From positions 4,464,001-4,528,000 of the forward strand of contig NC_135819.1 of NCBI RefSeq assembly GCF_964213995.1: a stretch of 64,000 nucleotides of DNA. Direction: 5' to 3'. Positions 431 to 26,890 of the stretch are shown piece by piece. The number at the start of each line of letters is the position of its first letter. Position 1 is the first letter of the stretch. The stretch comes from Mustelus asterias (taxonomy: Eukaryota). The translations under genes were made by a program, and so were the position numbers. The notes beneath the pieces are model-generated. The model was not told the origin of the DNA. It saw only the letters and a program-made list of their open reading frames with translations, and did not search any database.

Positions 431-505
431 CTTTCGGGTGCTGGGCGCCTCAGAATCAGCTTTCTCCAGACTCTCATAAACGTCAGTATTTGGTTGCGAG
501 GACAC
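431..505 (-). CDS. IgSF receptor, cytoplasmic exon 2 (VSSQPNTDVYESLEKADSEAPSTRK)
   Basis: Minus strand: acceptor gtctttctccctttaag, 75-nt open phase 0-0 exon, donor AAG|gtaacc. Carries a YESL tyrosine motif. Phase matches the 4304-4357 exon. No stop-containing terminal exon was confidently located. Confidence 0.65.
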
Positions 506-1015
506 CTTAAAGGGAGAAAGACGTCACCATTGGGAATCATGGCCCTGTCATAGCTACATGAGATTGAAGAGTAAGCCATCTCATCTCCCCTTGTCTCTTT
601 ATTCTGCCCAGTTCAGAATTCACACCACTACATTGGCAGGAAGGCCTTATCGGTCATGGCTTAATCCCATCGCGTTGAAATGAATAGCTCCCCCTTACGA
701 TGGACAACAGACCTCAGACTCATCTCCCATCCAAGAACAGGAAGGAAACTTGGATAAGGTCATAGGGGTGGAAGGTCATCCCCAATATTAACAATGGAAA
801 CACTGGCTGTTACTGGGAATAGAACCAGAGTCAGCTCCCACCTCAGGCCAATGGGTAACTGCACCGGGGGTACAGGTTAAAACGTTCACAGGCTCTGCCC
901 CTGTCTATATCTCCTCAACTGATCCCTGCCCTGACAGTACTCAGGAAACTTGGGCTTTAAGTTTAAAAGTTTAAGTTTGTTTATTAGTGTCAAAAGTAGG
1001 CTTACATTAACATTG

Positions 1016-1220
1016 TAAGGAGTCTTACAACACCAGGTCAAAGTCCAACAAGTTTATTTGGTAGCACGAGCTTTCGGAGCACTGCCCCTTCATCACTCAC
1101 CTGATGAAGGAGCGGCGCTCCAAAAGCTTGTGCTACCAAATAAACCTGTTGGACTTTAACCTGGTGTTGTGAGACTACTTACTGTGCCCACCCCAGTCCA
1201 ACGCCGGCATCTCCACATCA
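1016..1220. mobile_element. Miniature Penelope-derived element: two pLTR fragments head-to-head with hammerhead-like cores, inserted in a SINE tail
   Basis: About 1016-1095 is the reverse complement of about 1101-1180. Ends in ...gccggcatctccacatca like the Penelope at 59068. 14-bp TSD ttacattaacattg at 1002-1015 and 1221-1234. Confidence 0.85.
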
Positions 1221-3025
1221 TTACATTAACATTGCAATGAAGTTATTGTGAAAATCCCCTAGTCGCCACACTTCAGCACCTGTTCGGGTACACTGAGGGA
1301 GAATTTAGCATGGCTAATGCATCTAACCAGCACGTCTTTCAGAGTGTGGGAGGAAACCGGAGCGCCCGGAGGAAACCCATGCAGACACGGGGAGAATGTG
1401 CAGACACTGCACAGACAGGGACCCGAGCCAGGAATCGGACCCAGGTCCCTGGCGCCATGAGGCAGCAGTGCTAACCACTGTGCAGGTAAGAAGGAGATCG
1501 CAGCACTCATGGGTCTGGATGGACCTCTCCACTGTCTGATCCAGGGTGTGGATATTATCTGGAAGCTCCTTCAGATCTTCTCGCAGGTCATGCAGAACTT
1601 TCAGCATCTTCCAGCTTACGAACAATTCTCGATGTGGATCATCAACCTGGGCTTCAATATGAGCCTGGCTCCCACAATGCTTTATTGGTTGCCTTGGCGA
1701 TCACAGTATCTGAAAGCTAATCGGGAGTGCGTGTGGTTTTTTTTTTTTGCAGGTTCTGATCCGAAAAATATTTGTGAACTATATTCACTGATGTGAAAGT
1801 ATCGGTTGCAGACTGCAGGGGAATACAAGTTTATTTATTACTCACAAGTAAGGCTTACATTAACAATGAAGTTATTGTGAAATTCCCCTAATCACTACAC
1901 TCCAGCGCCTGTTTGGGTCACTGCACCCTAACCAGGACGTCTTTCGGACTGTGGAAGGAAATCAGAGCACCCGGAGGAAACCCACGCAGACACGGGGAGA
2001 ACGTGCAAACTCCGCACAGGCAGTGACCCAAGCCGGGAATCGAACCCGGGTCCCCTGGCGCTGTGAGGCAGCAGTGCTAACCACTGTGCCACCGTGACTG
2101 AGATCCAAAGATGTGCGGGTTAGGTGGATTGGCCGTGCTAAATTGACCCCAGTGTCAGGGGGATTGGCAGGGTAAATGTGTGGGGTTATGGGAATAGGGC
2201 CTGGGTGGGATTGTGGTCGGTGCAGGCTCGATGGGCTGAATGGCCTCCTTCTGCACTGTAGGGATTCTATGAGAGCAGGGTCAAGGTCAGGTGGCGTTTG
2301 AAAACCAAGACCCTGTTAACACCCGCTGCCTTGGTTACCACATGAAGTGTGGCCCCACCATGGCAACCAGCTGTGCAGCCCCACCTCAGCAACAGTCAAT
2401 GGGTTTGGGAGGGAGAGGGAGAAAACAGGCCATAAAAGCCAGCAAAATGGGGAATGCACAAGAGGTCAGAAATAGAGGGGGAGTGGATGCTCCAGAGGGG
2501 TTGAAGGAGATTAAAGAGGAGGGATGAGAGCACGGAGAATTTGAAAACAAACATGAGAATTTTCACTTTGCTTAATCAGAAGTCAGTATAATTTTGTGAG
2601 CACAGGGCTGACAGGGGAATGGACTTAGAATCATGGAAGAATCAGAGAATCCCTACAGTGCAAAAAGAGGCCATTCGGCCCATCAAGCCTGCACCGACAA
2701 CAATTCCACCGATCCCTGTAACCCCACTAATCCCCCTGACACAAAGGGGCAATTTAGCATGGCCAATCCACCGAACCTGCACATCTTTTGGACCGTGGGA
2801 GAATGTCTGTGCGGAGCCTGCACTGTCACCTGAGGCTGGAATTGAACGCGGGTCCCTGGCGCTGTGAGGCCGTGCCCCTCTGATTTGCAGCGAGCTAAGA
2901 GAAAGGCAGTAGAGTTTTGAATGACTTCAGGCTTACAGAGGGTAGAATGTGTGAGAGCAGCCAGAAGTGCATTGGAATAGTCTAGTCTAACAAAGGCACA
3001 TCTAACAGCGGATGAGGCTGGAAGG

Positions 3026-3330
3026 GGCGGCACGGTGGCACAGTGGTTAGCACTGCCGGCTCACAGCGCCAGCGACCTGGGTTCAATTCCCGGCCTTGGG
3101 TCACTGCCTGTGCGGAGCCTGCACATTCTCCCCGTGTCTGCGTGGGTTTCCTCTGGATGCTCTGGTTTTCTCCCACAGTCCAAAGATGTGCTAGTTAGGT
3201 TGATTGACCAGGCTAAATTGACCCTTAGTGTCGAGGAATTAGCAGGGTAAATACGTGGGGTTGCGGGAATAGGGCCTGGGTGGGATTGTGGTCGGTGCAG
3301 GCCTCCTTCTGCACTGTAGAGATTTTATGA
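3026..3330 (+). mobile_element. HE1-type tRNA-derived SINE (representative; dozens of copies on both strands, e.g. near 1240, 1850, 7390, 10735, 13735, 21510, 23800, 33900, 37400, 38215, 45960, 49045, 54230)
   Basis: A-box head ggcacggtggcacagtggttagcactgc, B-box ggttcaattcc, conserved body and LINE-like tail ...ccttctgcactgtag...attctatga. Family name comes from my recollection of elasmobranch HE1 SINEs. Confidence 0.85.
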
Positions 3331-3587
3331 TTCATAATGGGGTCGAATGTGACACCAAGGTCGCAAAAAAACTGGTTTAATCTCTGACTATTGGTGGGGC
3401 GAAGGGTGGAGTCTAGGAAACAAATGTGCATGGGATCAGTGACGTCTTCCTGCTGGAATGGGTGAGCACCGTGTTGGTCCCAGCACAGGGAGACAGAGCG
3501 GTGATTCACAGAATGTCCCTGATTGGAAACAGTGTCTGAAAGTCCCAGGTGAACATTGTGCTCCCTCATTCACATTCACACTGAAGG

Positions 3588-4292
3588 GAGGTGATGGCCT
3601 AGTGGTATTATCACTAGTCGATTCATCCAGAAACCCAGCTAATGCTCTGGGGACCCGGGTTCAAATCCCGCCACGGCAGATGGTGGAATTTGAATTCAAT
3701 TTAAAAAATTTGGAATTAAGAATCTACTGATGACCATGAAACAATTGTCGGAAAAACCCATCTGGTTCACCAATGTCCTTTAGGGAAGGAAATCTGCCAT
3801 CCTGACCTGGTCTGGCCTACATGTGATTCCGGAGCCACAGCAATGTGGTTGACTCTCAACTGCCCTCTGAAATCATAGAAACCCTACAGTACAGAAAGAT
3901 GCCATTCGGCCCATCGAGTCTGCACCGACCACAATCCTACCCCCATATCCTTACATATTTTACCCGCTAATCCCTCTAATCTACGCATCCCAGGACACTA
4001 AGGGGCAATTTTAGCACGGCCAATCAACCTAACCCGCACATCTTTGGACTGTGGGAGGAAACTGGAGCACCCGGAGGAAACCCACGCTGACACGAGGAGA
4101 AACTCCACACAGACAGTGACCCAAGCTGGGGATCGAACCCAGGTCCCTGGTCCGCTGTGCTACCGTGCCGCCCAAATGGCCCTAGCAAGCCACATGAAGG
4201 AAGTTCACCACCACCTTCTCAAGGGCAACAAGGGATGGGCAATAAATGCTGGCCTAGCCAGCGAGGCCCATGTCCCACAAATGAATGAAAAA
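3588..4292 (+). mobile_element. Second tRNA-derived SINE family (other copies about 23480-23735 -, 29810-30165 +, 44700-45050 -), here split by an antisense HE1-type SINE at about 3873-4172
   Basis: Head ggtgatggcctagtggtattatc...gggttcaaatccc. Its 3' tail gggatgggcaataaatgctggcc is also seen near 25700, downstream of the degenerate LINE at 24270-24930. Confidence 0.7.
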
Positions 4293-4303
4293 TAATCACT
4301 CAC

Positions 4304-4357
4304 CATGTACACTGGTTCTCCTACCTCTGGCCTTGCCACTCTGCGCCTTCTTTTGAA
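4304..4357 (-). CDS. IgSF receptor, cytoplasmic exon 1 (FKRRRRVARPEVGEPVYM)
   Basis: Strong acceptor cctcttttctttcag and donor ATG|gtgagt, 54 nt. In phase 0 it gives a polybasic stop-transfer segment directly after the TM exon. Confidence 0.85.
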
Positions 4358-4579
4358 CTGAAAGAAAAGAGGGGCAACCGTGATTGACAGATCCGGTCGC
4401 CTTCACCTCACTGCCAACAAAAGCACCAAAGATTGGAGACATCGGAAGTCAGGTCTGTAGAGCAACGAGACGTCAGCCACTCAAGTAAGAGTCTGAGAAA
4501 CTCAAACGTTAAGCAACAGATTCTGTTTCTGTGCAGATGCTGCCTGACCTGATGAGAGTTTGTGCCCCAATAGGAAAAA

Positions 4580-5175
4580 GAAGTTCAGACCAGTTCCCAT
4601 TTCCCCGTTTTACTGGTGTACCGCTTTGAGGTATACAAGACCAGTTCAGACCAGTTTTCTCATTTCCCCGTTTTACTGGTGTACCACTTTGAGGTATACA
4701 AGACCAGTTCAAACCAGTTTTCTCATTTCCCCGTTTTACTGGTGTACCACTTTGAGGTATACAAGACCAGTTCAGACCAGTTTTCTCATTTCCCCGTTTT
4801 ACTGGTGTACCACGTTGAGGTATACAAGACCAGTTCAGACCAGTTTTCTCATTTCCCCGTTTTACTGGTGTACCACTTTGAGGTATACAAGACCAGTTCA
4901 GACCAGTTTTCTCATTTCCCCGTTTTACTGGTGTACCACGTTGAGGTATACAAGACCAGTTCAGACCAGTTTTCACATTTCCCCGTTTTACTGGTGTACC
5001 ACTTTGAGGTATACAAGACCAGTTCAGACCAGTTTTCTCATTTCCCCGTTTTACTGGTGTACCACTTTGAGGTATACAACACCAGTCCAGACCAGTTTTC
5101 TCATTTCCCCGTTTTACTGGTGTACCACTTTGAGGTATACAAGACCAGTTCAGAGCAATATTCTCACTCCCCGGT
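4580..5175. repeat. 63-bp minisatellite, about 9.5 near-identical copies, in the TM/cytoplasmic intron
   Basis: Unit agaccagttcagaccagttttctcatttccccgttttactggtgtaccactttgaggtataca; 21-aa periodicity in the ORF track. Confidence 0.95.
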
Positions 5176-5326
5176 ATATACTGTTTTTTCCGCAGTTCCT
5201 CCACTAATATTCCTGCAGCCCACGACGCAGTTTCTTCTGGGACTTGCTGAGAAGTTTTAGTCACCGCAGAAGCGGGGTTGACGTCAGACACTGAGCAGGA
5301 CCGAGTTAAACCCCAAAGGTACTTAC

Positions 5327-5418
5327 AGCATATATGGCAAGGACTGTCACAATGATCAGGAGGAGCACAACACCGACACTGATCCCAGAGACGAGCCTCG
5401 TTTGTCTGTCAGTCGCAC
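5327..5418 (-). CDS. IgSF receptor, transmembrane exon ((G)ATDRQTRLVSGISVGVVLLLIIVTVLAIYA)
   Basis: Acceptor ttcctcctgtgttgcag, donor GCT|gtaagt, 92 nt, phase 1 to phase 0. Encodes an uncharged hydrophobic helix of about 23 residues. Confidence 0.9.
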
Positions 5419-5659
5419 CTGCAACACAGGAGGAACCTCTTTACTCAGCGGGTGGTTAGAACGTGGAACCTGCCACCGCACCAAGTAGCTGAGGTGGATC
5501 GCATTTGAGGGGAAGTGGGATGGGTACATGGGGAAGAAATGAATGGGGTATTTTGATGGGTTAGGGTGAACTGGGGTGGAAGGAGGCTGGTGTGTAACTT
5601 CAATACTGGCATAGTTGGGCTGAATGGCCTATTTCTGTGCTGTACATTCTGTCGTTCTA

Positions 5660-6436
5660 TAAGACCTTAAGATATAGGAGCAGAATTAGACCATTAGGCC
5701 CATCGAGTCTGCCCCGCCATTCAATCATGGCTGATATGATTCTCATCCCCAGTCTCCTGCTCCCTCCCGTAACCCTTGATGCCCTTATTGATCAAGAACC
5801 TAACTATCTCTGTCTTAAAGACACTCAATGACCTGGCCTCCACAGCCCTCTGTGGCAATGAGTTCCACAGATCCACCACCCTCTGGCTGAAGAAATTCCT
5901 CCGTATCTCAGTTTTAAAGGAGCGTCCATTCACTCTGAGGTTGAGTCCTCGAGTTCTAGTCTCTCCCACTAGTGGAAACATCCTCTCCACGTCCACTCTA
6001 TCCAGGCCTCTCAGTATTCTGTAAGTTTCAATGAGATCCCCCCTCATCCTTCTAAACTCCATCGAGTACAGACCCAGACTCCTCAACCGCTCCTCATATG
6101 ACAAACTCTTAATTCCTGGGATCATTCTGGACCCTCTCCAAGGCCAGCACATCCTTCCTTAGGTACGGTGCCCAAAACTGCTCGCAATACTCCAAATGGG
6201 GTCTGACCAGAATCTTATGCAGCCTCAGCAGTACATCCCTACTCTTGTATTCTAGCCCTCGAGAAATGAATGCTAACATTGCATTTGCCTTCCTAACTGC
6301 CAACTGAACCCACACGTTAACCTTAAGAGAATCCTGAACCAGGATTCCCAATTCCCTTTGGGCTTCAGATTTCCAAAGCCTTATCCCGTTTAGAAAATAG
6401 TCTACGTCTCTATTCTTCCTACGAAAGTGCATAACC
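5660..6436 (-). mobile_element. CR1/HER1-type LINE 3' fragment
   Basis: ORFs with LVRPHLEYCEQFWAP and RRMRGDLIETY..FFSQRVV.LWNSLP, typical of the CR1 ORF2 C-terminus. Confidence 0.9.
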
Positions 6437-6749
6437 TCACACTGTCAGCGAAGCCTCAGTTTCACCTCTGTCACAAGGTTGAGGGTTCAAACATAGAAAC
6501 ATAGAAACTAGAAGCAGGAGTAGACCATTCGGCCCTTCGAGCCTGCTCCGCCATTCATTTTGATCATGGCTGATCATCAAATTCAATATCCTGACTCCCC
6601 CCATATCCCTTGATCCCTTTAGCCCCAAGAGCTATATCTAACTTCTTCTTGAAATCACGCAAGACTCAGTGCAGAGCCTTGAGCATCAAAAAGATTAGGT
6701 GGAGACCCCAGTGCTAAACTGGGGGAATGCTGCATTGTCAGAGGTGATG

Positions 6750-7272
6750 TTGATTTGATTTATTATTGTTGCATGTATTAGTATACAGTGAAAAGTATTG
6801 TTTCTTGTGCGCTATACAGACAAAGCATACCATTCATAGAGAAGGAAAGGAGAGAATGCAGAATGGAGTGTAACAGTCATAGCTAGGGTGTAGAGAAAGA
6901 TCAGCTTAATGCAAGATAAGTCCATTCAAAAGTCTGACAGCAGCAGGGAAGAAGCTGTTCTTGAGTCGGTTGATACGTGACCTCAGGCTTTTGTATCTTT
7001 TTCCCAAAGGAAGAAGGTGGAAGAGGGAATGTCCGGGATGCGTGAGGTCCTTAATTATGCTGTCGAAGCAACGGGAAGTGCAGACAGAGTCAATGGATGG
7101 GAGGCTGGTTTGCGTGATGGATTGGGCTACGTTCACAACCCTTTGTAATTCCTTGTGGCCTTGGGCAGAGCAGGAGCCATACCAAGCTGTGATACAACCA
7201 GAAAGAATGCTTTCTATGGTGCATCTGTCAAGGTTGGTGAGAGTTGCAGCGGACATGCCAAATTTCCTTAGT
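6750..7272 (-). mobile_element. Rex1/Babar-like LINE 3' fragment
   Basis: RLRKFGMS..LTN..RCTIESILSGCITAWYGSC...RLKNSFFPAAVRLLN; (ATCAA)n tail. Confidence 0.8.
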
Positions 7273-8351
7273 CTGTTGTCTGTTGGTGTTGTCTGTTTGA
7301 ACAAAATGCTGAACCGAGGCTCCGTTTATAAGTTTATTTACTAGTGTCACAAGTAGGCTTACATTAACACTGCAATGTTAATGAAATTGCTGGCTCACAG
7401 CGCCAGGGACCCGGGTTCGATTCCAGCCTCGGGTCACTGTCTGTGCAGAGTCTGCACATTCTCCCCGTGTCTGCGTGGGTTTCCTCCGGGTGCTCCGGTT
7501 TCCTCCCACAGTCCGAAAGATATGTGGGTTAGGTTGTTTGGCCATGACTCTTCGGGTCCCAGGATGTGAAGGTTAGAGGGATTAGCAGGGTAAATATGTG
7601 GGGTGACGGGATTGGGCTTGGGTGGGATTGTTGTCGGTGCAGACTCGATGGGCCGAATGGCCTCCTTCTGCACTGTAGAGATTCTATGATTATAGATGGA
7701 CTGGTGGTGATTTAACCTGAAGATCACCACCAGTCCACCTATACTTCCCCGCATGGTAGGGAATCAGAATCCCGACAGTGCAGAAGGTTAAATCACCACC
7801 ACTCAGTTCTCCCTCCTCAAAGGGGAATGCAGCCTGTGGTCATCTGGGACTGTAGCAACTTTACCTGGATTGGACCAGCAACAGGGTATCTTAGCTGAAG
7901 CCTAATGCTGCCCTCAGTCACCATCCAGACTTCCCTGCAGCACCTGTGAGATAGATAACCCTTACCCGGTCTGGCCTACATGTGACTCCAGAGCCAGGGC
8001 AACATGGTTGACTCTTAACTGCCCTCTGAAATGGCCGAGTAAGACACTCCATTCAAGGGCAATTAGGAACAGGAGATCAATGCTGGTCCAGCCAGCGCCT
8101 CCCATATCCCATGAATGAATAAATCTAAAATTCTTGGTGATCCACAGCCTCAGGAACCTGGAGATTCCATCATTCCCACTGCTGCCTCAAAAAACCATAC
8201 AGCACAGAAGGAGACTAGTCAGCCCATCACATCTGGGCCATCTGTTTAAAAGAACTATTCAAGTATTCCCACTGGCCTGCCCTCACCTTATAGTTTTCTC
8301 CTTATTTATTCTATTGAAACCCACTCACAAATTTGAACAAATCCTTTAACG

Positions 8352-10490
8352 TAACATAAGAACATAACATAAGAACTAGGATCAGGAGTCGGCCATCTGG
8401 CCCTCGAGCCTGCTCCACCATTCATTAAGATCATGGCTGATCTTTTCGTGGACTCAGCTCCACTTACCCGCCCGCTCACCATAACCCTTAATTCCTTTTC
8501 TGTTCGAACATTTATCTATCCTTGCCTTAAGAACATTCAATGAGGTAGCCTCAACTGCTTCACTGGGCAGGGAATTCCACAGATTCACAACCCTTTGGGT
8601 GAAGAAGTTCCTCCTCAACTCAGTCCTAAATCTGCTTCCCCTTATTTTGAGGCCATGCCCCCTAGTTCTAGTTTCACCCGCCAGTGGAAACAACTTCCCT
8701 GCTTCTAACTTATCTGTTCCCTTCATAATCTTATATGTTTCCATAAGATCTCCCCTCATTCTTCTGAATTCCAATGAATATAGTCCCAGTCTACTCAGTC
8801 TCTCCTCATAAGTCAACCCTCTCAACTCCGGAATCAACCTAGTGAATATACCCGCCCCCCCCCCCCCCCCCCCCCCCCACACCCTTCAGTGCCAGTATAT
8901 CCTTTCTCAAGTAAGGAGACCAAAACTGTACACAGTACTCCAGGTGTGGCCTCACCAGCACCTTATACAGCTGCAACATAACCTCGCTGTTTTTAAACTC
9001 CATCCCTCTAGTAATGAAGGACAAAATTCCATTTGCCGCTTTAATTGCCTGCTGCACCTGCAAACCAACTCCTTGAGATTCCTGCACAAGGACACCCAGG
9101 TCCCTCTGCACAGCAGCATGCTGCAATTTTTTACCATTTAAATAATAGTCCATTTTGCTGTTATTCCTAGCAAAATGGATGACCTCAATTTACCAACACT
9201 GTACTCCATCTGCCAGACCCTCACCCACTCACTTAGACTATCTATATCCCTTTGCAGAATTTCAGTGTCCTCTGCACACTTTGCTCTGCCACTCATCTTA
9301 GTGTCATCTGCGAATTTTGACACACTACACTTGGTCCCCAACTCCAAATCATCTATGTAACTTGTAAACAGTTGCGGTCCCAACACTGATCCCTGAGGCA
9401 CACCACTAGTCACTGATCGCCAACCAGAAAAACACCCATTTACCCCCCACTCTTTGCTTTCTGTTAGCTAACCAATCCTCTATCCATGCTAATACATTAC
9501 CCGTAACACCGTGCACCTTTATCTTATGTAGCAGTCTTTGGTGCGGCACCTTGTCAAATGCCTTCTGGAAATCCAGATACACCACATCCACAGGTTCCCC
9601 ATTGATCACTGCACATGTAATGTTCTCAAAGAATTCCACCAAATTAGTCAAACATGACCTGCCCTTCATGAACCCACGCTGCGTCTTACCAATGAGACAA
9701 TATATATCCAGATGTCTTGCTATTTCTTCCTTGATGATAGATTCAAGCATTTTCCCTACTACAGAAGTTAAGCTAACCGGCCTATAGTTACCCGCCTTTT
9801 GTCTACCTCCTTTTTTAAACAGTGGCGTCACATTTGCTGTTTTCCAATCTGTGGGAATCACCCCAGAATCCAGCGAATTTTGGTAAATTACCACTCGTGT
9901 ATTTGTTATTTCTCCCGCCATCTCTTTTAGTCACTGGGATGCATTCCATCAGGACCAGGAGACTTGTCTACCTTTAGCCCCATTAACTTGCCCAACACTA
10001 CCTCTTTGGTGATAATGATAGTTCCTAGGTCCTCACCTGCCAGAGCCTTCCTGTCATCAATTTTTGGCATGTTATTTGTGTTTTCCACTGTGAAGACCGA
10101 CACAAAATACCTGTTCAATGCCTCGGCCATTTCCTCATTTCCAGTTATTACATCCCCCTTCTCATCCTCTAAAGGACCAATGTTTCCTTTCACCACTCTT
10201 TTTCGTTTTATATATTTGTAGAAACTTTTGCTATCTGTTTTTATATTCTGAGCTCGTTTGCTCTCATAATCCTTCTTACTTATAGCTTTTTTCGTGGCTT
10301 TCTGTTGACCTTTAAAGATTTCCCAATCCTCGAGGTTCCCACTAATCTTTGCCACTTTGTATGCATTTTCTTTCAGTTTGTTTCCCTCCTTTATTTCCTT
10401 GGATATCCATGGCTGATTATCTCTTTTTCTACAGTCCTTCCTTATCACTGGTATATACTTTTGCTGAGCACTGAAAAATCAGTTTGAAAG
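8352..10490 (-). mobile_element. CR1-type LINE, 5'-truncated and frameshifted
   Basis: RT motifs NYRPVSLTS, YLDFQKAFDKVPH, GVPQGSVLGP and FADDTK spread over several frames. Confidence 0.92.
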
Positions 10491-10520: not shown

Positions 10521-10634
10521 CTTGGGATTGTTGGCTATTTATTGTTGAACTGCCTGCCATTACTGATGATGATAACTGGTTGAGCAATGAGGTATTGGAG
10601 TGCGTCCAGCACACATCCATCAAATCAATCGTCG
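10521..10634 (-). CDS. IgSF receptor, candidate Ser/Thr/Gln-rich stalk exon (ATIDLMDVCWTHSNTSLLNQLSSSVMAGSSTINSQQSQ)
   Basis: Long polypyrimidine tract ending ...ctggaaag, then an open 114-nt phase 1-1 exon. Donor CAAG|gtccat is weak. Unique island between repeats, positioned between the last Ig exon and the TM exon. Confidence 0.5.
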
Positions 10635-11856: not shown

Positions 11857-12135
11857 CGGGCTTCAGGGAACCAATCACGTCGACCTGCACCGTTGTGAAT
11901 CTGGTTCCCAGCCTATTCTCAGCGGAGCAGACGTAGTTCCCCTGGTCACTGAGTGAGATGTTCTCCACTTGGAGTTTCAGATGATTTGTTACTCTGCTCA
12001 GCAAGACTGTTCCATTGAGCATCCAAGACATTTTGGCTTTGGGGTTGCTGTTGGATATACACAGCAACTCGAGTGGTTCATCTTCTATCTTCACTATCTC
12101 TCCCTCTGGTCTCACTGTGAGATTTACAGGCCCAT
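11857..12135 (-). CDS. IgSF receptor, membrane-proximal C2/I-set Ig domain exon
   Basis: Acceptor cttttcttacag; (Y)GPVNLTV..LELLC.SNSNP...SW.LNG...L.VENISLSDQGNYVCSAENRLG. Phase-1 donor most likely CCC G|gtttgt; an earlier ATT G|gttccc is an alternative. Confidence 0.88.
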
Positions 12136-14939: not shown

Positions 14940-15239
14940 ATGAAACCTGGAGCTGTAGAGTCTTCGGTATCCTTGTATTTTCATGAGTGATGTAGCAGTT
15001 GATGAATTTACTGTGGTCGTTCGCTTGTGGCACAAATGCGATCATGGACATAGCATTGAAGCTTCCATCACAACGAGTTTCGACAGATACCAGAGAGCTT
15101 GGCTGCAGCTTCTCCTTGCCTGCATACCAATCCACCAGAATCTTTTTCGGATAAAACCTGATTATATTCAAGTACAGAATGGCAGGCTTGTTCTCTTCCA
15201 GTGGTGTGCTCAGGAATGAAACCTGAGAAATGGAGACAG
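14940..15239 (-). CDS. IgSF receptor, C1-set-like Ig domain exon (no B-strand Cys)
   Basis: Acceptor ttttctcttttgttgtttaag, donor T|gtaagt, 300 nt, phase 1-1. Motifs FYP..I.V.W, DGSF...S and C.ITH are C1-set hallmarks. Confidence 0.88.
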
Positions 15240-18009: not shown

Positions 18010-19445
18010 CATGTCCAGAGGACTGGAAAGGAGCTAATATAACACCGCTGTTTAAGAAGGGAAGGAGGCAGCAAACGGGAAATTATAGGCCGGTTAGCCT
18101 GACTTCGGTCGTTGGCAAGATTTTAGAGTCCATTATTAAAGATGAGATCGCAGAGTACTTGGAAGTGCATGATAAAGTAGGACTGAGTAAGCACGGCTTT
18201 GTCAAGGGAGGTCATGTCTGTCAAATCTGTTAGAGTTCTTTGAGGAGATAACAAGGAAGTTAGATAAAGGAGAACCAGTGGACGTGATTTATTTAGATTT
18301 CCAGGAGGCCTTTGACAAGGTGCCGCATAGGAGGCTGTTAAATAAGTTAAGTGCCCATGGTGTTAAGGACAAGATCCTGGCATGGATAGAGGATTGGCTG
18401 ACTGGCAGAAGGCAGAGAGTGGGGATAAAGGGGTCTTTCTCAGGATAGCAGCCGGTGACTAGTGGTGTGCCTCAGGGGTCGGTGCTGGGACCACAACTTT
18501 TCACAATATACATTAACGATTTGGAAGAAGGAACTGAAGGCACTGTTGCTAAGTTTGCAGATGATACAAAGATATGTAGAGGGACAGGTAGTATTGAGGA
18601 AGCAGGGGGGCTGCAGAAGGACTTGGACAGGTTAGGAGAATGGGCAAAGAAATGGCAGATGGAATACAATGTGGAAAAGTGGGAGGTTATGCACTTTGGA
18701 AGGAGGAATGGAGGCATAGACTATTTTCTAAATGGGAAAATGCTTCGGAAATCAGAAACACAAAGGTTAACGTGCAGGTTCAGTCGGCAGTTAGGAAGGT
18801 AAATGCAATGTTAGCATTCATGTTGAGAGGGCTAGAGTACAAGAGCAGGGATGTACTTCTGAGGCTGTATAAGGCTCTGGTCAGACCCTATTTGGAGTAT
18901 CGTGAGCTGTTTTGGGACCCATATCTAAGGAAGGATGTGCTGACCTTGGAAAGGGTCCAGAGGACGTTCACAAGAATGATCCCTGGAATGAAGAGCTTGT
19001 CGTATGAGGAATGGTTGAGGACTCTGGGTCTGTACTCGTTGGAGTTTGGAAGGATGAGAGGAGATCTTATTGAAACTTACAGGATACTGCGAGGCCTGGA
19101 TAGAGTGGACATGGAGAGGATGTTTCCACTAGTAGGAAAAACTAGAACCAGAGGGCACAACCTCAGGCTGAAGGGACGATCCTTTAAAACAGAGATGAGG
19201 AGGAATTTCTTCAGCCAGAGAGTGGTGAATCTGTGGAACTCTTTGCCGCAGAAGGCTGTGGAGGCCAGGTCATTGAGTGTCTTTAAGACAGAGATGGATA
19301 GGTTCTTGATTAATAAGAGGATCAGGGCGTTATGAGAAAAGGCAGGAGAATGGGGATGAGAAAAATATCAGCCATGATTGAATAGCAGAGCAGTCTCGAT
19401 GGGCCGAGTGGCCTAATTTTGCTCCTATGTCTTATGGTCTTATGG
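18010..19445 (+). mobile_element. CR1-type LINE ORF2 3' portion
   Basis: RT motifs NYRPVSLTS, GVPQGSVLGP, FADDTK, CR1 C-terminus and tandem tatggtct tail. Confidence 0.92.
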
Positions 19446-20759
19446 TCTAGGTGCATTGGCCGTGCAAAATACTCCCTCAGTACCCAAACAGGCGTCGGAG
19501 TGTGGCGACTAGGGGATTTTCACAGTCACTTCATTGCAGTGTTAATGCAATGTGATACTAATAAATAAACTTTAAAACTTTAAACTTTAAGCATCAGACA
19601 GTACTGAACGCTGCCCTCCAATATCAAACATCCCAGGATACATTATTTCCAAAAATAAAAGCAAATCGCTGCAGAATCTGGAAATCTGAAATAAAAACAG
19701 ACAATTGCTGGATAAATTCAGCGGCTGGAATGTTACAGCCTTGCCCGTCCCGAAACGTGTGGAATTCACTCCCACAGAAAGTAGTTGAGGCCAAAACATT
19801 GTGTGATTTCAAGAAGAAATTAGATATCGCTCTTGGGGCCAGAGGGATCAAGGGATATGGAGGGAAGAGGGATCAGGATATTGAATTCGATGATCAGCTG
19901 TGATCAAGATGAATGGCGGAGCAGGATCGAAGGGCCGAATGGCCTCCTCCTGCTTCTAGTTTCTATGAAACAGTAAAATCCCGCCCGGGTTAAAGGGACT
20001 TTCCCATGTCTGCCCCTCGCCCGCTCCGATTCCTGTGGCGGGTGGGGCGCTAAAATTCCGGCGAGCCGGTCTGTGGAGAGAGAAACAGAGTAAATGCTTC
20101 GAGTCTGGTTACATGGACGCGAAAAGTTAACTCTGCCTCTCTCTCAACACAGACGCTGCCAGATCTGCTGAGGTTTTCCAGCATTTTTCTGGTTCAGTGG
20201 AAATTAGTCCCTACTTTGAAAGCCTCTCTTCCATCCAAATAGGCAACATAGAATCCCTACAGTGCAGAAGGAGGCCATTCAGCCCATCGAGTCTGCACCG
20301 ACCACAATCCCACCCTGGCCCTATCCCCATAACCCCATGCATTTACCCTAGCTAGTCCCCCTGACATTAAGGGGCAATTTGCCAATTCACCTAACCTGTG
20401 CATCTCATAACCCCACATATTCGCCCCGTTAATCCCTCTAACCCCATGCATCCCGGGACACTAAGGGGCAATTTAGCACAGCCAGTCCACCCAACCTTCA
20501 CATCTTTGGACACAAAGGGACAATTTAGCATGGCCAGTCCACCCAACCTGCACACCTTTGGACTGTGGGAGGAAAACGGAGCACCCGGAGGAAGCCCATG
20601 CAGACATGGGGAGAACGCGCAGACTCCACACAGACAGTGACCCCATCCGGGAATCGAACCTGGGTCCCTAGTGTTGTGAGGCAGCGGTGCTAACCACTAT
20701 GCCACTGTGCCACCCCGATGGCTGCACAGTCACTATGGGGACCTGATTTCAGCACTCAC

Positions 20760-21152
20760 CTTTGATAATCAGCTGTGATATGTCAGGCTCTCTTTTATAT
20801 CCAATTCTGGAACAGAAATAGAATCCAGCATCTGACCCGATTAATCCTCTGATGTGCAGTTGGGCAGTGTGAAGGGAAATTATTGAGCTCGAATAATGAA
20901 AAAAGGAAGCACATCGGTTTAAATCGGAGGTGTTTGCAATGATTGCGACCCTTTTTCGGTCATTGGCGTGTTTGTAATATGACCATTGCAGGGATGACAT
21001 CTCAGCCACCTTTGCTTTGGAGAATTGTGTAGATATTTTGGGTGCCAAAGTCGGTTTCTGGATGGCATCTGCGTACTTGCAGCTGATTACCACATCTTTG
21101 TTTAGTTCACCAGAGATTACCTTCTTAAGTTGTGCATTGCTACCAATGTTCC
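20760..21152 (-). CDS. IgSF receptor, N-terminal V-set Ig domain exon
   Basis: Acceptor ttttaatttgtattccag, donor AAA G|gtgagt, 393 nt open, phase 1-1. VVISC...LQW...AQLHIRGLIGSDAGFYFC matches the V-set D-x-G-x-Y-x-C motif. Confidence 0.9.
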
Positions 21153-21749
21153 CTGGAATACAAATTAAAATTTACAGCGGGATAGAACGGGCATTTAAAT
21201 AAAATAATCACAGCGCACGCCATCACATGACCAAAGCAAAATAACGCAGATGCTGAAAATCTACAACATAAATAGAAAATGCTGGAAATACTCAGCAGGT
21301 CAGGCAGTATCTGTGGAGGGAGGACCAGAGTTTGTTTCAGGCCTGTTTCATCAGAACCTTTCATTTAAACGATCAATTTTAAAAAATGTATTCATGGGAC
21401 ATGGGTGTCGCTGACTGGGCCAGTATTTATTGCCCATCCCTAGTCGCCCTTGAACTGAGTGGCTTGCTGGGCCATTCCAGAGGGCAGTTAAGAGTCAACC
21501 ACATTGCAGCATGGTGGCACAGTGGTTAGCACTGCTGTCTCAGAGCGCCAGGGACCCGGGTTCAATTCCCGGCTTGGGTCACTGTCTGTGTGGAGTTTGC
21601 ACATTCTCCCCCATGTCTGCGTGGGTTTCCTCCGGGTGCTCCGGTTTCCTCCCACAGTCCGAAAGACGTGCTGGTTAGGTGCGTTGACCTGAACAGGCGC
21701 CGGAGTGTGGCGACTAGGGGAATTTCACAGTAACTTCATTGCAGTGTTA

Positions 21750-23443
21750 ATAGAACATAGAACAGTACAGAACAGTACAGGCCCTTCGGCCCTCGATGTT
21801 GTGCCGCGCTTTGCCCGAAACCAAGATCAAGCTATCTCACTCCCTATCATCCTGGTGTGCTCCATGTGTCTATCCAATAACCGCTTGAAAGTTCCTAAAG
21901 TGTCCGACTCCACTATCAAAGCAGGCAGTCCATTCCACACCCCAACCACTCTCTGAGTGAAGAACCTTCCTCGGACATCCCTCCTGTATCTCCCACCATG
22001 AACCTTATAGTTATGCCCCCTAGTAATAGCAACATCCACCCGAGGAAATAGTCTCTGAACGTCCACTCTATCTATCCCCCTCATCATCTTATAAACCTCT
22101 ATTAAGTCGCCTCTCATCCTCCTCCGCTCTAAAGAGAAAAGCCCTAGCTCCCTCAACCTTTCCTCACAAGACCTACCCTCCAAACCAGGCAGCATCCTGG
22201 TAAATCTCCTTTGCACTCTTTCCAATGCTTCCGCATCTTTCTTATAGTGAGGTGACCAGAACTGCACACAATATTCCAAATGTGGTCTCACCAAGGTCCT
22301 GTACAGTTGCAGCATAACCCCACGGCTCTTAAACTCAAACCCCCTGTTAATAAACGCTAACACACTATAGGCCTTCTTCACGGCTCTATCCACTTGAGTG
22401 GCAACCTTCAGAGATCTGTGGATATGAACGCCAAGATCTCTCTGTTCCTCCACATTCCTCAGAACCCTGCCGTTGACCCTGTAATCCGCATTCAAATTTG
22501 TCCTACCAAAATGAATCACCTCACTTATCAGGATTAAATTCCATCTGTCATTTTTCAGCCCAGCTCTGCATCCTATCAATGTCTCTTTGCAGCCTACAAC
22601 AGCCCTCCACCTCATCCACTACTCCACCAATCTTGGTGTCATCAGCAAATTTCCTGACCCACCCTTCAGCCCCCTCCTCCAAATCATTGATAAAAATCAC
22701 AAATAGCAGAGGACCCAACATTGATCCCTGTGGTACACTGCTGGTAACTGGTCTCCAGTCTGAAAATTTTCCATCCACCACCACCCTCTGTCTTCTATGA
22801 GATTGTAAGAAGTTTAACAACACCAGGTTAAAGTCCAACAGGTTTATTTGGTAGCAAAAGCCACACAAGCTTTCGGAGCTGCAAGCCCCTTCTTCAAGTG
22901 AGTGGGAATTCTGTTCACAAACAGAGCATATAAAGACACAAACTCAATTTACATGAATAATTGTTGGAATGCGAATACTTACAACTAATCAAGTCTTTAA
23001 GAAACCTCTATGAGATTGCCAGTTACTTATCCAATCAGCCAAATCTCCCTCTATCCCACACCTCCTTACTTTCTTCATGCGCCGACCATGGGGAACCTTA
23101 TCAAACGCCTTACTAAAATCCATGTATACAACATCAACTGCTCTATCTTCATCTACACACCTAGTTACCTCCTCAAAGAATTCAATCAAATCTGTGAGGC
23201 AAGACTTACCCTTCACGAATCCATGTTGACTATCCCGGATTAAGCTGCATCTTTCCAAATGGTCATAAATCCTATCCCTCAGGACCTTTTCCATTAACTT
23301 ACCGACCACCGAAGTAAGACTAACTGGCCTATAATTACCAGGGTCATTCCTATTTCCTTTCTTGAACAGAGGAACAACATTCGCCACTCTCCAGTCCTCT
23401 GGCACTATCCCCGTGGACAGTGAGGACCCAAAGATCAAAGCCA
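21750..23443 (-). mobile_element. CR1-type LINE 3' portion, interrupted by a Penelope pLTR fragment (22806-23006)
   Basis: RT motifs in ORFs 21827-23444. The insert matches the Penelope 3' end and is flanked by a 12-bp TSD tctatgagattg (22794-22805, 23007-23018). Confidence 0.9.
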
Positions 23444-24269
23444 TGTGTCTAATAAATAAATAAACTTTAAACTTTATTGCTGTGGCACTGGAGTCACATA
23501 TAGGTCAGACCAGGTAAGGACAGCAGATTTCCTTCCCTAAAGGACCATAGTGAATCAGATAGGTTTTTCTGACAATCGACAATGGTTTCATGGTCATCAA
23601 CAGATTCCTAATTCCAGATTTTTTTGATTGAATTCAAATTCTACCATCTGCCATGGCGCGATTCAAACCTGGGTCCCCATGAGTTGAGTTTCTGGATTAA
23701 TAGTCTAGCAATAATACCACTCGGCCATTGCCTCCCCGATAATTGGCTAAGATAATGCACCTTCAGATCACCATGTATTCATGAAAAGTGAACTTTCATA
23801 GAATCCCTACAGTGCAGAAGGAGGCCATTCTGCCCAACGAACCTGGACCAACTCTCGGACAGTATTTTACCCAGACTTTATCCCCATAACCCCACTAATC
23901 CCTCCAACCTACGCATTTTCGGACACTAAGGGGCAATTTAGCATGGCCAATGCATCTAACCTGCATGTCTTTGGACTGTGGGAGGAAACTGGAGCACCCG
24001 GAGGAAATCCATGCAGACACAGGGAGAATGTCTGTAGGAGTTTGCACAGTCACCGAGGTCAGAATTGAACCTGGGTCCCTGGCGCTGTGAGGCAGCAGTG
24101 CTAACCACTGTGCCACCGTGCCGCCCAGAATCAATCTCAGGTGATCCTCAATAGCACAGAGGATGCACAACAATCACTCTGTGTCGGGAGCTGCCTCAGA
24201 GTGCGTTCCTTAATGATTGCACTGTTTCCTAAACCATTCACAACTCCTTAGCTACTAAAGCAGCCCGTG

Positions 24270-24930
24270 CCCATATGCAGCAAGAATTGGGCAACATTAA
24301 GGTGGTAAATGACGCACACAAGTGCCACGCAATGACCATCCACAAGAAGAAGAAATGTAACCATCTCTCTTTGATACTCAATGGCATTTCCATCACTGAA
24401 CAACTACCATCAACATCCTGGGGATTACCATTTCCCAGACGTCTAACTGGAGCAGCTATATAAATACTGTGGCTACAGGGACAAGTCAGAGGCCAGGAAT
24501 ACTGCAGCGAGTAACTCACCTCCTGACTCCCCAGAACCCATCCACCATTCATATTCAGGAGTGCGATGGAATGTTCTCATGCCTTGCCTGGATGAGTGTG
24601 GCTCAAACAAGACTCAAAAAACTTGACAAAGTCCAGGACAAAGCAGCCTGATCTATTGGCACCCCCTCCACCATATTAAACATTCAATTCCTCCGCCAAC
24701 GATAAACATTAACAGCAACGTGTACCACAAATGAGTTGAACTCAGCAATTCACCAATACTCTCTTTATAGCACTTTGCAAACCTACCACCTCCACCACCT
24801 GGAACGAGAAAGGCAAAGGATACAAGAGAACACCACTGCCTGCAAGTTCCCCTCCAAGTCATACACTATCCTGACTTGGAAATATATTGCTGTTCCTTCA
24901 CTGTTGCTGGGTCAAATTCCTGGAACTCCC
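24270..24930 (+). mobile_element. Degenerate non-LTR retrotransposon 3' region (likely partner LINE of the second SINE family)
   Basis: Broken ORF QRPGILQRVTHLLTPQ....LAWMS...LKKLDKVQDKAA resembles an RT thumb region; clade not assigned. Confidence 0.55.
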
Positions 24931-25054
24931 TTCATAGAATCACAGAATCCCTACAGCGCAGAAGAAGGCCATTTGGCCCATCGAGCCTGCACTGACAATA
25001 ATCCCACCCAGGCCTGATCCCCGTAACTCCATACATTTACCCTGTTGATCCCCC

Positions 25055-25470
25055 TGACACTACGGGTCAATTTAGCATGGCCAATCCACCTAACCCGCAC
25101 ATCTTTGGGACACTAAAGGGCAATTTAGCATGGCCAATCCACCTAACCTGCACGTCTTTGGGACACTAAAGAGCAATTTAGCATGGCCAATCCACCTAAC
25201 CTGCACATCTTTGGGACACTAAGGGGCAATTTAGCATGGCTAATCCACCTAACTTGCACATCTTTGGGGCACTAAGGGGCAATTTAGCATGGCTAATCCA
25301 CCTAACTTGCACATCTTTGGGGCACTAAGGGGCAATTTAGCATGGCCAATCTACCTAACCTGCACATCTTTGGACACTAAGGGGCAATTTAGCATGGCCA
25401 ATCTACCTAACCTGCACATCTTTGGACACTAAGGGGCAATTTAGCATAGCCAATCCACCTAACCTGCACA
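25055..25470 (-). repeat. 52/53-bp SINE-internal tandem array (about 8 copies)
   Basis: Same unit as the other arrays, antisense. Confidence 0.9.
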
Positions 25471-25928
25471 CCTTTGAACTGTGGGAAGAAACCGGAGCAC
25501 CTGGAGGAAACCCACGCAGACATGGGGAGAACGTGCAAACTCCACACAGACAGTGACCCGAGGCTGGAATTGAACCCGGGCCCCTGGCGCTCTGAGGCAG
25601 CAGTGCTAACCACTGTGCCACTGTGCTGCCCTAACTGCATTGTGGTGTGCCTATACCACAAGGACTATCAAGAAGGGGGCTCTTCATAACTCACTTCTGG
25701 GCAATTAGGGATGGGTAATAAATGCTGGCCTTACCATCGACGCTCACATCGCATGTATAATTTTTTGTTTAAATTGTCTCTGGCACACACTGCCTTAGTA
25801 TCTCGTCAGTTTTCTTGCAATTATATCGATATATAGAAATACTACAAACCCCTAAAGTACTGAAATTTAAAGAGAAAAAATTTTTTTAAATGGGAGCAAT
25901 CAAACCTGCAAGACTAAATGCCGTCTAC

Positions 25929-25974
25929 CCTCCATTCTGGAGCAGTATGATAATGAGATTAAACACACCAACAT
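25929..25974 (-). CDS. Alternative candidate leader exon (MLVCLISLSYCSRME-G)
   Basis: ATG, short hydrophobic stretch and phase-1 donor G|gtagac (weak), compatible with the V exon. Confidence 0.3.
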
Positions 25975-26269
25975 TCCCAGGGTATCCCACTCCGTAACAC
26001 ACTGTAAAAAGATCCGGTGACTGACTCAGACAGCTAGACACAGTTAACTGAAGAACGAGTCTACAACTACTCATTCCCGGGCACGAGCCCATTCCCCGTG
26101 CTTTCCATTTCCCAAACTCCATTCTCAACAGAGCCTCGGATGTGGAGGGAAAGAGTCCATAGAATCCCTACAGTGCAGAATGAGGCCATACGGTCCATTG
26201 AGCCTGCACCGACAACAATCCCACCCAGACCCGATCCTCGTAACCCCACACATTTACCCTGCTAATCCC

Positions 26270-26780
26270 CCTGACACTAAGGGGCAATTTAGCATGACTA
26301 ATCCACCTAACCTACACATCTTTGGACATCAAAAGGCAATTTAGCATGGCCAATCCACCTAACCAGCACATCTTTGGACACTAAGGAGCAATTTAGCATG
26401 GCCAATCCACCTAACCTACACATCTTTGTACACCAAAGGGCAATTTAGCATGGCCAATCCACCTAACCCGCAAATCTTTGGACACTAAGGGGCAATTTGG
26501 CATGGCCAATCGACCTAACCTACACATCTGTGGACACTAAGGGACAATTTAGCATGGCCAATCCACCTAACCTGCACATTTTTGGACTCTAAGGGGCAAT
26601 TTAGCATGGCCAATCCACCTAACCTGTACATCTTTCGACACTAAGAGGCCATTTAGCATGGCCAATCCACCTAACCTACACATCTGTGGACACTAAGGGA
26701 CAATTTAGCATGGCCAATCCACCTAACCTGCACATTTTTGGACACTAAGGGGCAATTTAGCATGACCAATCCACCTAACC
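26270..26780 (-). repeat. 52-bp SINE-internal tandem array (about 10 copies)
   Basis: Same unit, antisense. Confidence 0.9.
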
Positions 26781-26826
26781 AAAGGTTAAAAGGATCAAAA
26801 AGAAAGTCAGAAAGTCAATCTTGTAC

Positions 26827-26890
26827 CTGCGAAATAGAGACCAGTGATAGACATGCGCCAAAACCAGACGGAGAGGGCTAGACAATTCAT
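26827..26890 (-). CDS. IgSF receptor, probable signal-peptide exon (MNCLALSVWFWRMSITGLYFA-G)
   Basis: ATG at 26890, 64 nt, hydrophobic, phase-1 donor GCA G|gtacaa in frame with the V exon. Confidence 0.55.

Follow-up and report, generated by a model that had tools for sequence, protein, structure and literature searches.

Does the minus strand of a 64,000-nucleotide stretch of Mustelus asterias DNA (the window) encode a genuine receptor with V-set and C1-set domains and, if so, to which family of immune or adhesion molecules does that receptor belong? The adaptive immune toolkit of jawed vertebrates has true C1-set domains as its hallmark. Shark genes with a C1-set outside Ig, TCR and MHC serve to reconstruct the origin of that toolkit (PMC12227049, PMC10751288).

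The initial annotation had joined eight minus-strand exons into a single gene. We found that all eight are open within the boundaries listed below, with AG before, GT after and compatible phases, and that the leader exon starts at an ATG. Residue numbers refer to isoform X1 of the RefSeq model described in the next paragraph.

26827..26890, minus strand: exon 1, start codon and signal peptide; 21 codons plus one base, phase 1 donor (residues 1-21)
20760..21152, minus strand: exon 2, V-set domain, phase 1-1 (residues 23-152)
14940..15239, minus strand: exon 3, C1-set domain, phase 1-1 (residues 154-252)
11857..12135, minus strand: exon 4, I-set/Ig_3 domain and short connecting peptide, phase 1-1 (residues 254-345)
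10521..10634, minus strand: proposed stalk exon, rejected; outside the supported gene model
5327..5418, minus strand: exon 5, extracellular juxtamembrane residues and uncharged transmembrane helix, phase 1-0 (residues 347-376)
4304..4357, minus strand: exon 6, basic stop-transfer stretch and first conserved tyrosine, P-x-Y-[MV] (residues 377-394)
431..505, minus strand: exon 7, second conserved tyrosine, D-V-Y-[ED]-[ST]-L (residues 395-419); absent from isoform X2

When the translations of the eight exons were compared as exact substrings with both Mustelus RefSeq isoforms, seven of them (leader, V, C1, C2, TM, cyt1 and cyt2) were found, in order, in XP_078091045.1, a 428-aa Mustelus asterias model named "Siglec-12 isoform X1", of which they cover residues 1-419; the single residues between the exon blocks are split codons. 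The leader ends at a GT donor and is conserved among orthologues. Positions 431-26890 thus contain, on the minus strand, the first seven coding exons of one Mustelus asterias gene. The 114-nt stalk exon (10634-10521, minus strand) is present in neither isoform X1 nor X2, and in all eight aligned orthologues the third Ig domain runs on to the membrane span with no insert. It matched no Pfam family, its region is unique within the window, and no other exon of the set has such poor splice sites, the acceptor GGAAAG having no pyrimidine run and the donor being GTCCAT. The C2 exon (exon 4) joins the TM exon (exon 5) directly through a split Gly codon.

As exon 7 ends at a GT donor without a stop codon, the gene extends past the start of the window. 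Neither the last nine residues of isoform X1, which include a third tyrosine, nor the alternative tail of isoform X2 is encoded anywhere within the window, and with these tails encoded beyond it the product is 428 aa (X1) or 408 aa (X2). The previously proposed join therefore holds for seven exons and fails for the stalk, while the length of about 455 aa has to be replaced by those of the two isoforms, with the stalk excluded and the last exon lying off the window. The three junction peptides put forward with that model, QLIIK-AVSI, LQVS-YGPV and AIYA-FKRRRR, are all present in the isoform X1 protein. The gene had also been described as hidden; however, RefSeq already models it in Mustelus (XP_078091045.1, XP_078091046.1) and in six of the seven other sharks that carry it. 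The introns of the Mustelus gene are full of transposon remains. There are no paralogous exons within the window, and database searches returned one cluster per species, which suggests a single-copy gene.

The Mustelus product is a type I membrane protein: a signal peptide is followed by a V-set domain, then by true C1-set and I-set/Ig_3 domains, and lastly by an uncharged span and a tail. The V exon alone scored 23.4 bits against Pfam V-set, below the cut-off of 26, whereas in the whole protein the V-set match reached 33 bits, and Pfam V-set was matched in all eight orthologues. The domain contains the canonical B and F cysteines, one extra cysteine and a B-C insertion of about 20 residues. 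Its AlphaFold2 model had a pLDDT of 71.9, with exon residues 29-47 below 50, and Foldseek matched it to pIgR D2 and to Ig light-chain V domains. Both canonical cysteines are kept in seven species and both are missing from Pristiophorus; mean pairwise identity of the domain across the eight shark species is 0.49.

The second domain scored 34.1 bits against Pfam C1-set (PF07654; cut-off 21) compared with 19.7 for C2-set_2, and a single C1-set stretch was matched in each of the eight orthologous proteins. Sequence matches of the C1 exon in the PDB were to Ig constant domains, MHC class I alpha-3 and beta-2-microglobulin. The model (pLDDT 84.7) has the seven strands A, B, C, D, E, F and G, and its best Foldseek matches were HLA-DM, MHC class II and beta-2-microglobulin. 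The canonical B-F disulfide of this domain is missing in seven of the eight species: the F-strand cysteine is present in all, but in the MAFFT alignment the B-strand column reads L, L, L, L, L, L, C, L, with cysteine in Heptranchias alone. The Mustelus domain has a tyrosine beside this column and an additional cysteine in the D-E turn. The latter and the extra cysteine at the foot of the V domain are both present in five species and both absent from three. The C1 domain has a mean pairwise identity of 0.51. The loss of its disulfide, like that of the Pristiophorus V cysteines, could reflect relaxed constraint on parts of the ectodomain.

The third Ig domain is the most conserved (mean pairwise identity 0.59). 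Its exon scored 45.6 bits against Ig_3 and 38.7 bits against I-set, one or other of which was matched in 8/8 orthologues, and in the PDB it matched contactin-2, CEA and MAG. Pfam matches per exon and across all eight orthologues thus bear out the proposed layout of V, C1 and third Ig domains followed by a membrane span and a tyrosine-bearing tail, and the C1-set call is upheld by Pfam, by PDB sequence matches and by the predicted fold.

The membrane span has no charged residue and its hydrophobic run is conserved in the eight orthologues. The tail of about 50 residues contains three tyrosines conserved in all eight species, in the contexts P-x-Y-[MV] (membrane-proximal, the tyrosine column being invariant), D-V-Y-[ED]-[ST]-L and [IV]-Y-[AE]-N (distal, encoded off the window in Mustelus). 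The ITIM consensus is [SIVL]-x-Y-x-x-[IVL]. The three tyrosines of Mustelus isoform X1 have P/S, D/L and A/T at -2/+3, and none of them fits the ITIM or ITSM consensus; across the family the ITIM consensus is fitted solely by the third tyrosine of Heptranchias. An ITAM was also looked for in the tail and rejected, as L/I is missing at +3 of the first tyrosine and some 22 residues separate the second from the third. ITAM-coupled activating receptors are recognised by a charged transmembrane residue or by a tail ITAM; neither was found here, and this candidate class was set aside. By consensus, the invariant Y-x-N is a candidate Grb2-type site and Y-x-x-L a candidate SH2 site of the generic kind.

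Orthologues were found in eight sharks including Mustelus, spanning Galeomorphii and Squalomorphii. The seven others are 40-58% identical to the Mustelus protein; six are modelled in RefSeq, and the Pristiophorus member is known here from UniRef entries only. The gene tree matches the shark species tree, with all five inner branches supported at 98/98 or above, and the eight-species alignment has 71 invariant columns, among them the tail tyrosines. Judged by the exact match to a database protein and by orthologues at these identities, far beyond chance, the gene is intact and real. The family HMM separates the family sharply from other proteins: full-length members scored 488-795 bits and the next entry was a 2158-aa multi-C1 frog protein, at 348 bits summed over 14 domains. 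Outside sharks, no relative closer than about 25% identity came up in the searches, of which a single one, with just the C1 exon as query, was exhaustive and the others were word-limited; within that scope the family is apparently restricted to sharks.

Public annotation already predicts the gene under inconsistent borrowed names, CADM1/3-like on the one hand and Siglec-8/12/14 on the other: Mustelus, S. torazame, Heptranchias and Pristiophorus carry the Siglec name, and Cetorhinus, Carcharodon, S. canicula and Heterodontus the CADM name. It seems that nobody has studied the family in the literature. The suggestion that the receptor falls into no named family and may be lineage-specific agrees with its occurrence in the eight shark species only, and with the failure of the Siglec, CADM/nectin, SIRP and UrIg features that we tested.

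We infer that the locus encodes a member of an unnamed, fast-evolving shark V-C1-I receptor family, neither Siglec nor CADM, whose products act as tyrosine-signalling surface recognition receptors, and we put the probability of this reading at roughly 0.6. Such a receptor would sit at the cell surface, and the ligand of its V and C1 domains, both of which evolve fast, is probably carried by another cell or by a microbe. Engagement of the ligand would lead to phosphorylation of the tail tyrosines and recruitment of SH2 proteins, and signalling would probably be autonomous, without a charged-TM adaptor. Isoform X2, which lacks the second-tyrosine exon and ends differently, may be a signalling-poor variant.

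A different origin would be as a SIRP-like V-C1 offshoot in which exon shuffling swapped the membrane-proximal C1 for an I-set domain, a step made mechanically easy by the fact that all the Ig exons are phase 1-1. Four of the ten sampled best non-family profile matches come from amphibians or reptiles and bear the label SIRP-beta-1-like or PTPNS1-like. For one of these four, comparison with the family profile gave a probability of 98.9% and an E of 3.6e-17 across 186 columns that reach from the V E-strand to the end of C1; its first C1 shares 29% identity with the C1 exon. SIRP-alpha domain 3 is among the PDB profile matches. However, the SIRP-type labels are automatic names, and any C1 domain would show similarity of this degree. 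In none of the eight species does V strand G contain a J-like G-x-G motif, which argues against a SIRP-like origin, domain 3 is Ig_3/I-set and not a SIRP C1 in all eight, and the tail motifs fall outside the ITIM consensus in seven. We consider a SIRP offshoot unlikely.

Rather unlikely, too, is that the family is the shark-only survivor of an ancient non-rearranging V-C1 stock, to which an adhesion-type I-set domain was fused by phase-1 shuffling and in which a V-to-C1 bridge replaced the C1 disulfide in Lamniformes and Carcharhiniformes. That stock would also have been the source of SIRP-like and antigen-receptor-like genes. If, in addition, the locus were linked to an MHC-paralogous region, it would say something new about the spread of C1 domains, both before antigen receptors appeared and afterwards.

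We also considered a diverged CADM or nectin-type orthologue engaged in homophilic or heterophilic cell adhesion, which the shared ectodomain layout of V, C1-like and I-set domains would allow. Among the matches listed for the C1 model, mouse Necl-4 domain 2 had the top TM-score (0.83; rmsd 1.7, rank 45), a Nectin-2 cluster was among the look-alikes of the V exon in the Atlas (score 0.94), and nectin-1 domains 2-3 were among the PDB profile matches (E 2.5e-15), although this last match leaves out the V domain and no CADM chain is among the best 60. CADM and nectin tails have a conserved FERM-binding motif and a C-terminal PDZ/afadin-binding motif. The tail ends of the shark proteins, by contrast, vary by species in length and sequence and share neither a hydrophobic PDZ-type C-terminus nor a juxtamembrane FERM-type motif, the conserved elements being the three tyrosine motifs. 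Moreover, CADMs are very conserved, whereas these orthologues are just 40-58% identical to the Mustelus protein. An adhesion molecule of this type is improbable.

The name given to the Mustelus model implies a true Siglec, with a V domain that binds sialic acid and inhibitory signals in the tail. Bat Siglec-14 is the best non-family match of the profile search (E 5.4e-9) and is collinear with the family profile across three Ig domains (probability 98.5%, E 2.3e-15, 315 columns), the stretch linking domains 2 and 3 can be aligned with its Siglec counterpart, and CD22 and MAG are among the PDB profile matches for these two domains. Identity to bat Siglec-14 is only 22%, however, and collinearity at such a level is expected of any three-Ig receptor. 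In Siglecs an arginine in strand F of the V-set binds sialic acid, and a B-E intrasheet disulfide takes the place of the B-F one. The column aligned to this arginine reads S, V, S, D, D, A, R, V, with arginine in one of the eight species; that of the E-strand cysteine is an invariant alanine, and the ordinary B and F cysteines are kept in seven species. Domain 2 also scores better as C1-set than as C2-set_2. It is very improbable that these proteins are Siglecs.

That the open exons are remnants of a decaying or mis-modelled gene, as the lost C1 disulfide, the sub-threshold V exon and the transposon-crowded introns might imply, is scarcely credible given seven open exons with consensus splice sites, intact orthologues with a species-like tree in eight species that diverged as far back as the origin of modern sharks, and 71 invariant columns that include the tail tyrosines.

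To the shark genes with a C1-set domain outside Ig, TCR and MHC, this one contributes an unnamed V-C1-I receptor, conserved across modern sharks, with a tri-tyrosine tail of its own. The practical value is modest: the misleading automatic names Siglec and CADM are corrected and nothing known is overturned. The gene is a defined candidate for work on expression and ligands and for mapping relative to MHC-paralogous regions.

Compared with known systems, the family resembles Siglecs (CD33-related, CD22 and MAG) as type I proteins with an N-terminal V-set, a C2-set_2-matching second domain, an Ig_3/I-set domain and tail tyrosines, but lacks their conserved F-strand arginine and the B-E cysteine pair. 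With CADM, nectin and Necl proteins it shares the V, C1-like, I-set ectodomain and a C1 model that fits Necl-4 domain 2; its fast evolution and the three tyrosine motifs in place of FERM- and PDZ-binding ends set it apart from these proteins. Like SIRPs it combines a V that does not rearrange with a true C1-set domain behind it, and has tail tyrosines; unlike SIRPs (V-C1-C1) it has an I-set third domain, no J-like V motif and, in seven of eight species, no ITIM. CEA is the top PDB profile match (E 1.2e-38, summed over repeated CEA domains), a score that is high because several CEA repeats match the one I-set domain of the family; CEACAM6 aligns at profile positions 108-344, and the third domain and linker are of CEACAM type, although the domains that follow V in CEACAMs are C2/I-type and none is C1-set. 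UrIg genes are reported to combine a VJ domain with many C1 domains, of which nurse shark UrIg2 has nine (PMC12227049), whereas the present family has one C1 and one I-set domain and no J motif. Like UrIg and UrIg2, however, its members are non-rearranging shark IgSF genes in which a V exon is followed by a C1 exon, and PDB entry 9dmx is matched both by the C1 exon (E 1.3e-4) and by the family profile (E 1.6e-17).

The eight exons that the initial annotation had proposed for the receptor gene on the minus strand were each translated singly, with the frame of each set by the phase of the preceding exon.

Proposed exons of the V-C1-Ig receptor gene, window positions 431-26890
26890-26827, minus strand: leader exon, start/end phases 0/1
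21152-20760, minus strand: V exon, phases 1/1
15239-14940, minus strand: C1 exon, phases 1/1
12135-11857, minus strand: third Ig (C2) exon, phases 1/1
10634-10521, minus strand: stalk exon, phases 1/1
5418-5327, minus strand: transmembrane (TM) exon, phases 1/0
4357-4304, minus strand: first cytoplasmic exon (cyt1), phases 0/0
505-431, minus strand: second cytoplasmic exon (cyt2), phases 0/0

All eight were open in this exon-wise translation, with AG before and GT after them at all internal boundaries. Seven of the translations are exact substrings, in order, of residues 1-419 of the 428 aa M. asterias RefSeq isoform X1 (P0161, XP_078091045.1), so that these seven exons had been correctly drawn, as had the overall architecture of V, C1 and third Ig domains, membrane span and tyrosine-bearing tail. 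A cluster mate of P0161, the M. asterias protein P0158 (XP_078091046.1, 'sialic acid-binding Ig-like lectin 12 isoform X2'), is likewise identical to the window's exons. The gene, which had been described as hidden, was therefore already modelled in RefSeq.

The proposed stalk exon had the poorest splice signals of the set, with an acceptor (...TCCTCTGGAAAG) that has no pyrimidine run beside the AG, and the donor GTCCAT. Its peptide matched no Pfam family, and there was no second copy of it inside the window that would mark it as repeat-derived; nor were second copies of any other exon found within the window. We rejected this exon because its peptide is found in neither M. asterias isoform, X1 or X2, and because an alignment of the eight shark orthologues (A1) shows nothing inserted where the third Ig domain adjoins the membrane span. 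A further coding exon had been missed at the other end of the model. Since cyt2 has no stop codon and ends at a GT donor, the reading frame must run past window position 1, and no frame of the window encodes either the final 9 residues of X1 or the differing 14-residue end of X2. The gene's 3' end is outside the window.

Sequencing runs for this stretch comprised 23 rows, none recorded as RNA; 10-18% of the sampled words, which may come from exons or from repeats, occur in 18 small runs presumed to be RNA. The predicted splicing and expression of the gene rest on the RefSeq models and on cross-species conservation. We conclude that the gene is real and already modelled, and that it belongs to a family that is without a name and has so far been seen in sharks only.

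The introns and the 27-64 kb part of the window are filled with LINE-type frames and many SINE-like frames; LINE-type reverse-transcriptase/endonuclease-like open frames lie at 8457-10478, 18191-19332, 21830-23504, 41208-43778 and 59282-61610. No second cellular gene was recognised in the six-frame listing of the introns or of the 27-64 kb part, which consists mostly of reverse-transcriptase and SINE-like frames. Both strands of the TM-cyt1 intron have long open frames at 4512-5408 in which a peptide unit of some 20 residues recurs, indicating a putative tandem minisatellite adjoining the TM exon. Several overlapping long frames on the minus strand at 35780-37096 also contain a repeated unit (…GLFPGTGTL…), suggesting some 1.3 kb of arrayed tandem repeats.

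Pfam and PDB sequence searches were run with each exon singly. The V exon scored 23.4 bits against V-set (E 7e-5), slightly below the cut-off of 26; it had no significant match among PDB sequences (best E 0.028), a word-based search found no candidate, and the ESM Atlas returned generic V-set clusters only (CD200R-like, Nectin-2, PD-1). The C1 exon reached 34.1 bits against C1-set (cut-off 21) versus 19.7 bits against C2-set_2, and its PDB matches were Ig constant domains, MHC class I alpha-3 and beta-2-microglobulin, with E values down to 1e-7, along with UrIg2 (PDB 9dmx, E 1.3e-4). For the third Ig exon the Pfam scores were 45.6 bits (Ig_3) and 38.7 bits (I-set), and the PDB matches were contactin-2, CEA and MAG.

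The V and C1 exons were also modelled structurally, with the seven other orthologues supplied as alignment. The V exon model is a V domain of nine strands (pLDDT 71.9) with an insertion at residues 29-47 where pLDDT falls below 50, and Foldseek matched it to pIgR domain 2, Ig light-chain V and TCR V domains; these fold matches are all generic V domains and name no family. The C1 exon model has seven strands (pLDDT 84.7), and its highest TM-score, 0.83, was to Necl-4 domain 2. At the level of the predicted fold the C1 assignment stands despite the missing B-strand cysteine, because the model folds like a C1 domain and has HLA-DM, MHC class II, beta-2-microglobulin and MHC class I alpha-3 as its best fold matches.

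Cysteine sites were compared across the eight species at window positions 14940-15239 and 20760-21152 (A1 columns 105, 186, 219 and 244).

Cysteines of the V and C1 domains in eight shark species
C1 B-strand cysteine: Heptranchias only, 1 of 8
C1 F-strand cysteine: 8 of 8
C1 D-E turn cysteine: 5 of 8, the Carcharhiniformes and Lamniformes
Extra cysteine, V C''-D region: the same 5 of 8
V canonical B- and F-strand cysteines: 7 of 8; Pristiophorus is without both

It can be seen that the extra V cysteine and the C1 D-E turn cysteine occur together in five species and are both absent in the other three. Given how Ig domains are usually arranged, the C''-D loop of V lies opposite the D-E turn of C1 at the domain junction, which makes a V-to-C1 interdomain bridge possible, with one phylogenetic event behind it. 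The two cysteines may form such a bridge in place of the lost C1 disulfide. In a V-C1-C1 protein of the frog Pelodytes ibericus (P0144, 'PTPNS1-like') the first C1 domain has Ser at the B-strand cysteine site, so that the shark family is not alone in having lost the canonical C1 disulfide.

The membrane span contains no charged residue, and three tyrosines of the tail are conserved in all eight species.

Conserved tail tyrosines
First: P-x-Y-[MV], cyt1 exon
Second: D-V-Y-[ED]-[ST]-L, cyt2 exon
Third: [IV]-Y-[AE]-N, last exon, off the window

Judged against the usual consensus sequences, none of the three Mustelus tyrosines fits an ITIM or ITSM, the third tyrosine of Heptranchias being the only one to fit an ITIM, and no pair of tyrosines forms an ITAM; the third fits a Grb2-type Y-x-N in all species. 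Mustelus isoform X2 skips cyt2 and has another tail of 14 residues, with its last exon off the window, and so is without the second and third conserved tyrosines. In Pristiophorus japonicus (P0159/P0160) the tail unit bearing the second tyrosine is tandemly duplicated, and in isoform X2 of this species the C1 exon is cleanly skipped, so that V is joined straight to the third Ig domain. The family combines an ectodomain of V, true C1 and I-set domains with a conserved tri-tyrosine tail, and its function is inferred.

An exhaustive phmmer search with the C1 exon against 1.84 billion cluster representatives gave 220 proteins at E <=1e-3, of which the best 150 were examined. Exactly three of these 150 matched in a single stretch, namely P0004 (60% identity), P0008 (433 aa, 54%) and P0058 (44%), and these were also the highest identities among the 150; the remaining proteins each had at least two C1 stretches, mostly at 21-35% identity. 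Word-based searches returned seven proteins with P0008, all family members, and nine with A1, seven of them in the family. Lineage records were consulted for three of the eight member species.

Species with a family member
Carcharhiniformes: M. asterias (Triakidae), Scyliorhinus canicula, S. torazame
Lamniformes: Cetorhinus maximus, Carcharodon carcharias
Heterodontiformes: Heterodontus francisci
Hexanchiformes: Heptranchias perlo
Pristiophoriformes: Pristiophorus japonicus

The database names of these proteins conflict ('cell adhesion molecule 3-like', 'cell adhesion molecule 1-like', 'sialic acid-binding Ig-like lectin 8 / 12 / 14'). V-set, C1-set and Ig_3/I-set were matched in all eight species, the orthologues are 40-58% identical to the Mustelus protein, and mean pairwise identity is 0.49 for V, 0.51 for C1, 0.59 for the third Ig domain and 0.54 for the TM exon. 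Full-length members scored 488-795 bits with the family HMM; the best outsider, at 348 bits, was a 2158-aa frog protein with 14 C1 repeats summed. All five inner branches of a maximum-likelihood tree of the eight proteins were supported at >=98/98, and the tree agrees with shark systematics, separating Squalomorphii from Galeomorphii and placing Heterodontus outside Lamniformes and Carcharhiniformes. This species-like tree and the finding of a single cluster in each species suggest that the gene is single-copy and has been handed down from the ancestor shared by modern sharks. As terminal branches measure 0.06-0.7 changes per site, the gene evolves fast. A literature search that included the accession numbers of six family members found no paper describing the family; it could still be listed in the supplementary gene tables of PMC12227049 and PMC10751288.

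Outside the family, the best match of the profile search was a bat Siglec-14 (P0164; E 5.4e-9, 24% identity), with which the family profile is collinear across all three Ig domains (probability 98.5%, 315 columns, 22% identity). Where the Siglec has its F-strand arginine, the eight species have S, V, S, D, D, A, R and V, so that the arginine is not conserved; the column at the Siglec E-strand cysteine is invariant alanine, and the family retains the ordinary V-domain B and F cysteines in seven of eight species. On these grounds a Siglec reading was rejected.

A sample of ten was drawn from the best non-family matches to the family profile, plus the top match of the C1-exon phmmer search. Four, from frogs or lizards, carried SIRP-beta-1-like or PTPNS1-like labels, five were uncharacterised (four frog, one unnamed MetaClust entry) and one was labelled only 'Ig-like domain-containing'. 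The alignment with the SIRP-labelled P0144 begins at the V E-strand and extends through C1 (probability 98.9%, E 3.6e-17, 186 columns), and the first C1 domain of P0144 shares 29% identity with the C1 exon. The PDB profile search gave a mosaic, in which CEA, contactins, MAG and CD22 align with either the third domain or domains 2-3, Nectin-1 matches domains 2-3, Ig lambda chains match V and C1, and UrIg2 and SIRP-alpha match C1. Readings of the gene as a CADM/nectin, as a SIRP or as a pseudogene were considered, and all were rejected.

A further reading was that the family belongs with UrIg and UrIg2, which PMC12227049 describes as carrying a VJ domain and many C1 domains. The shark family, in contrast, is without a J motif and has a single C1 domain, and we rejected this reading on that difference.
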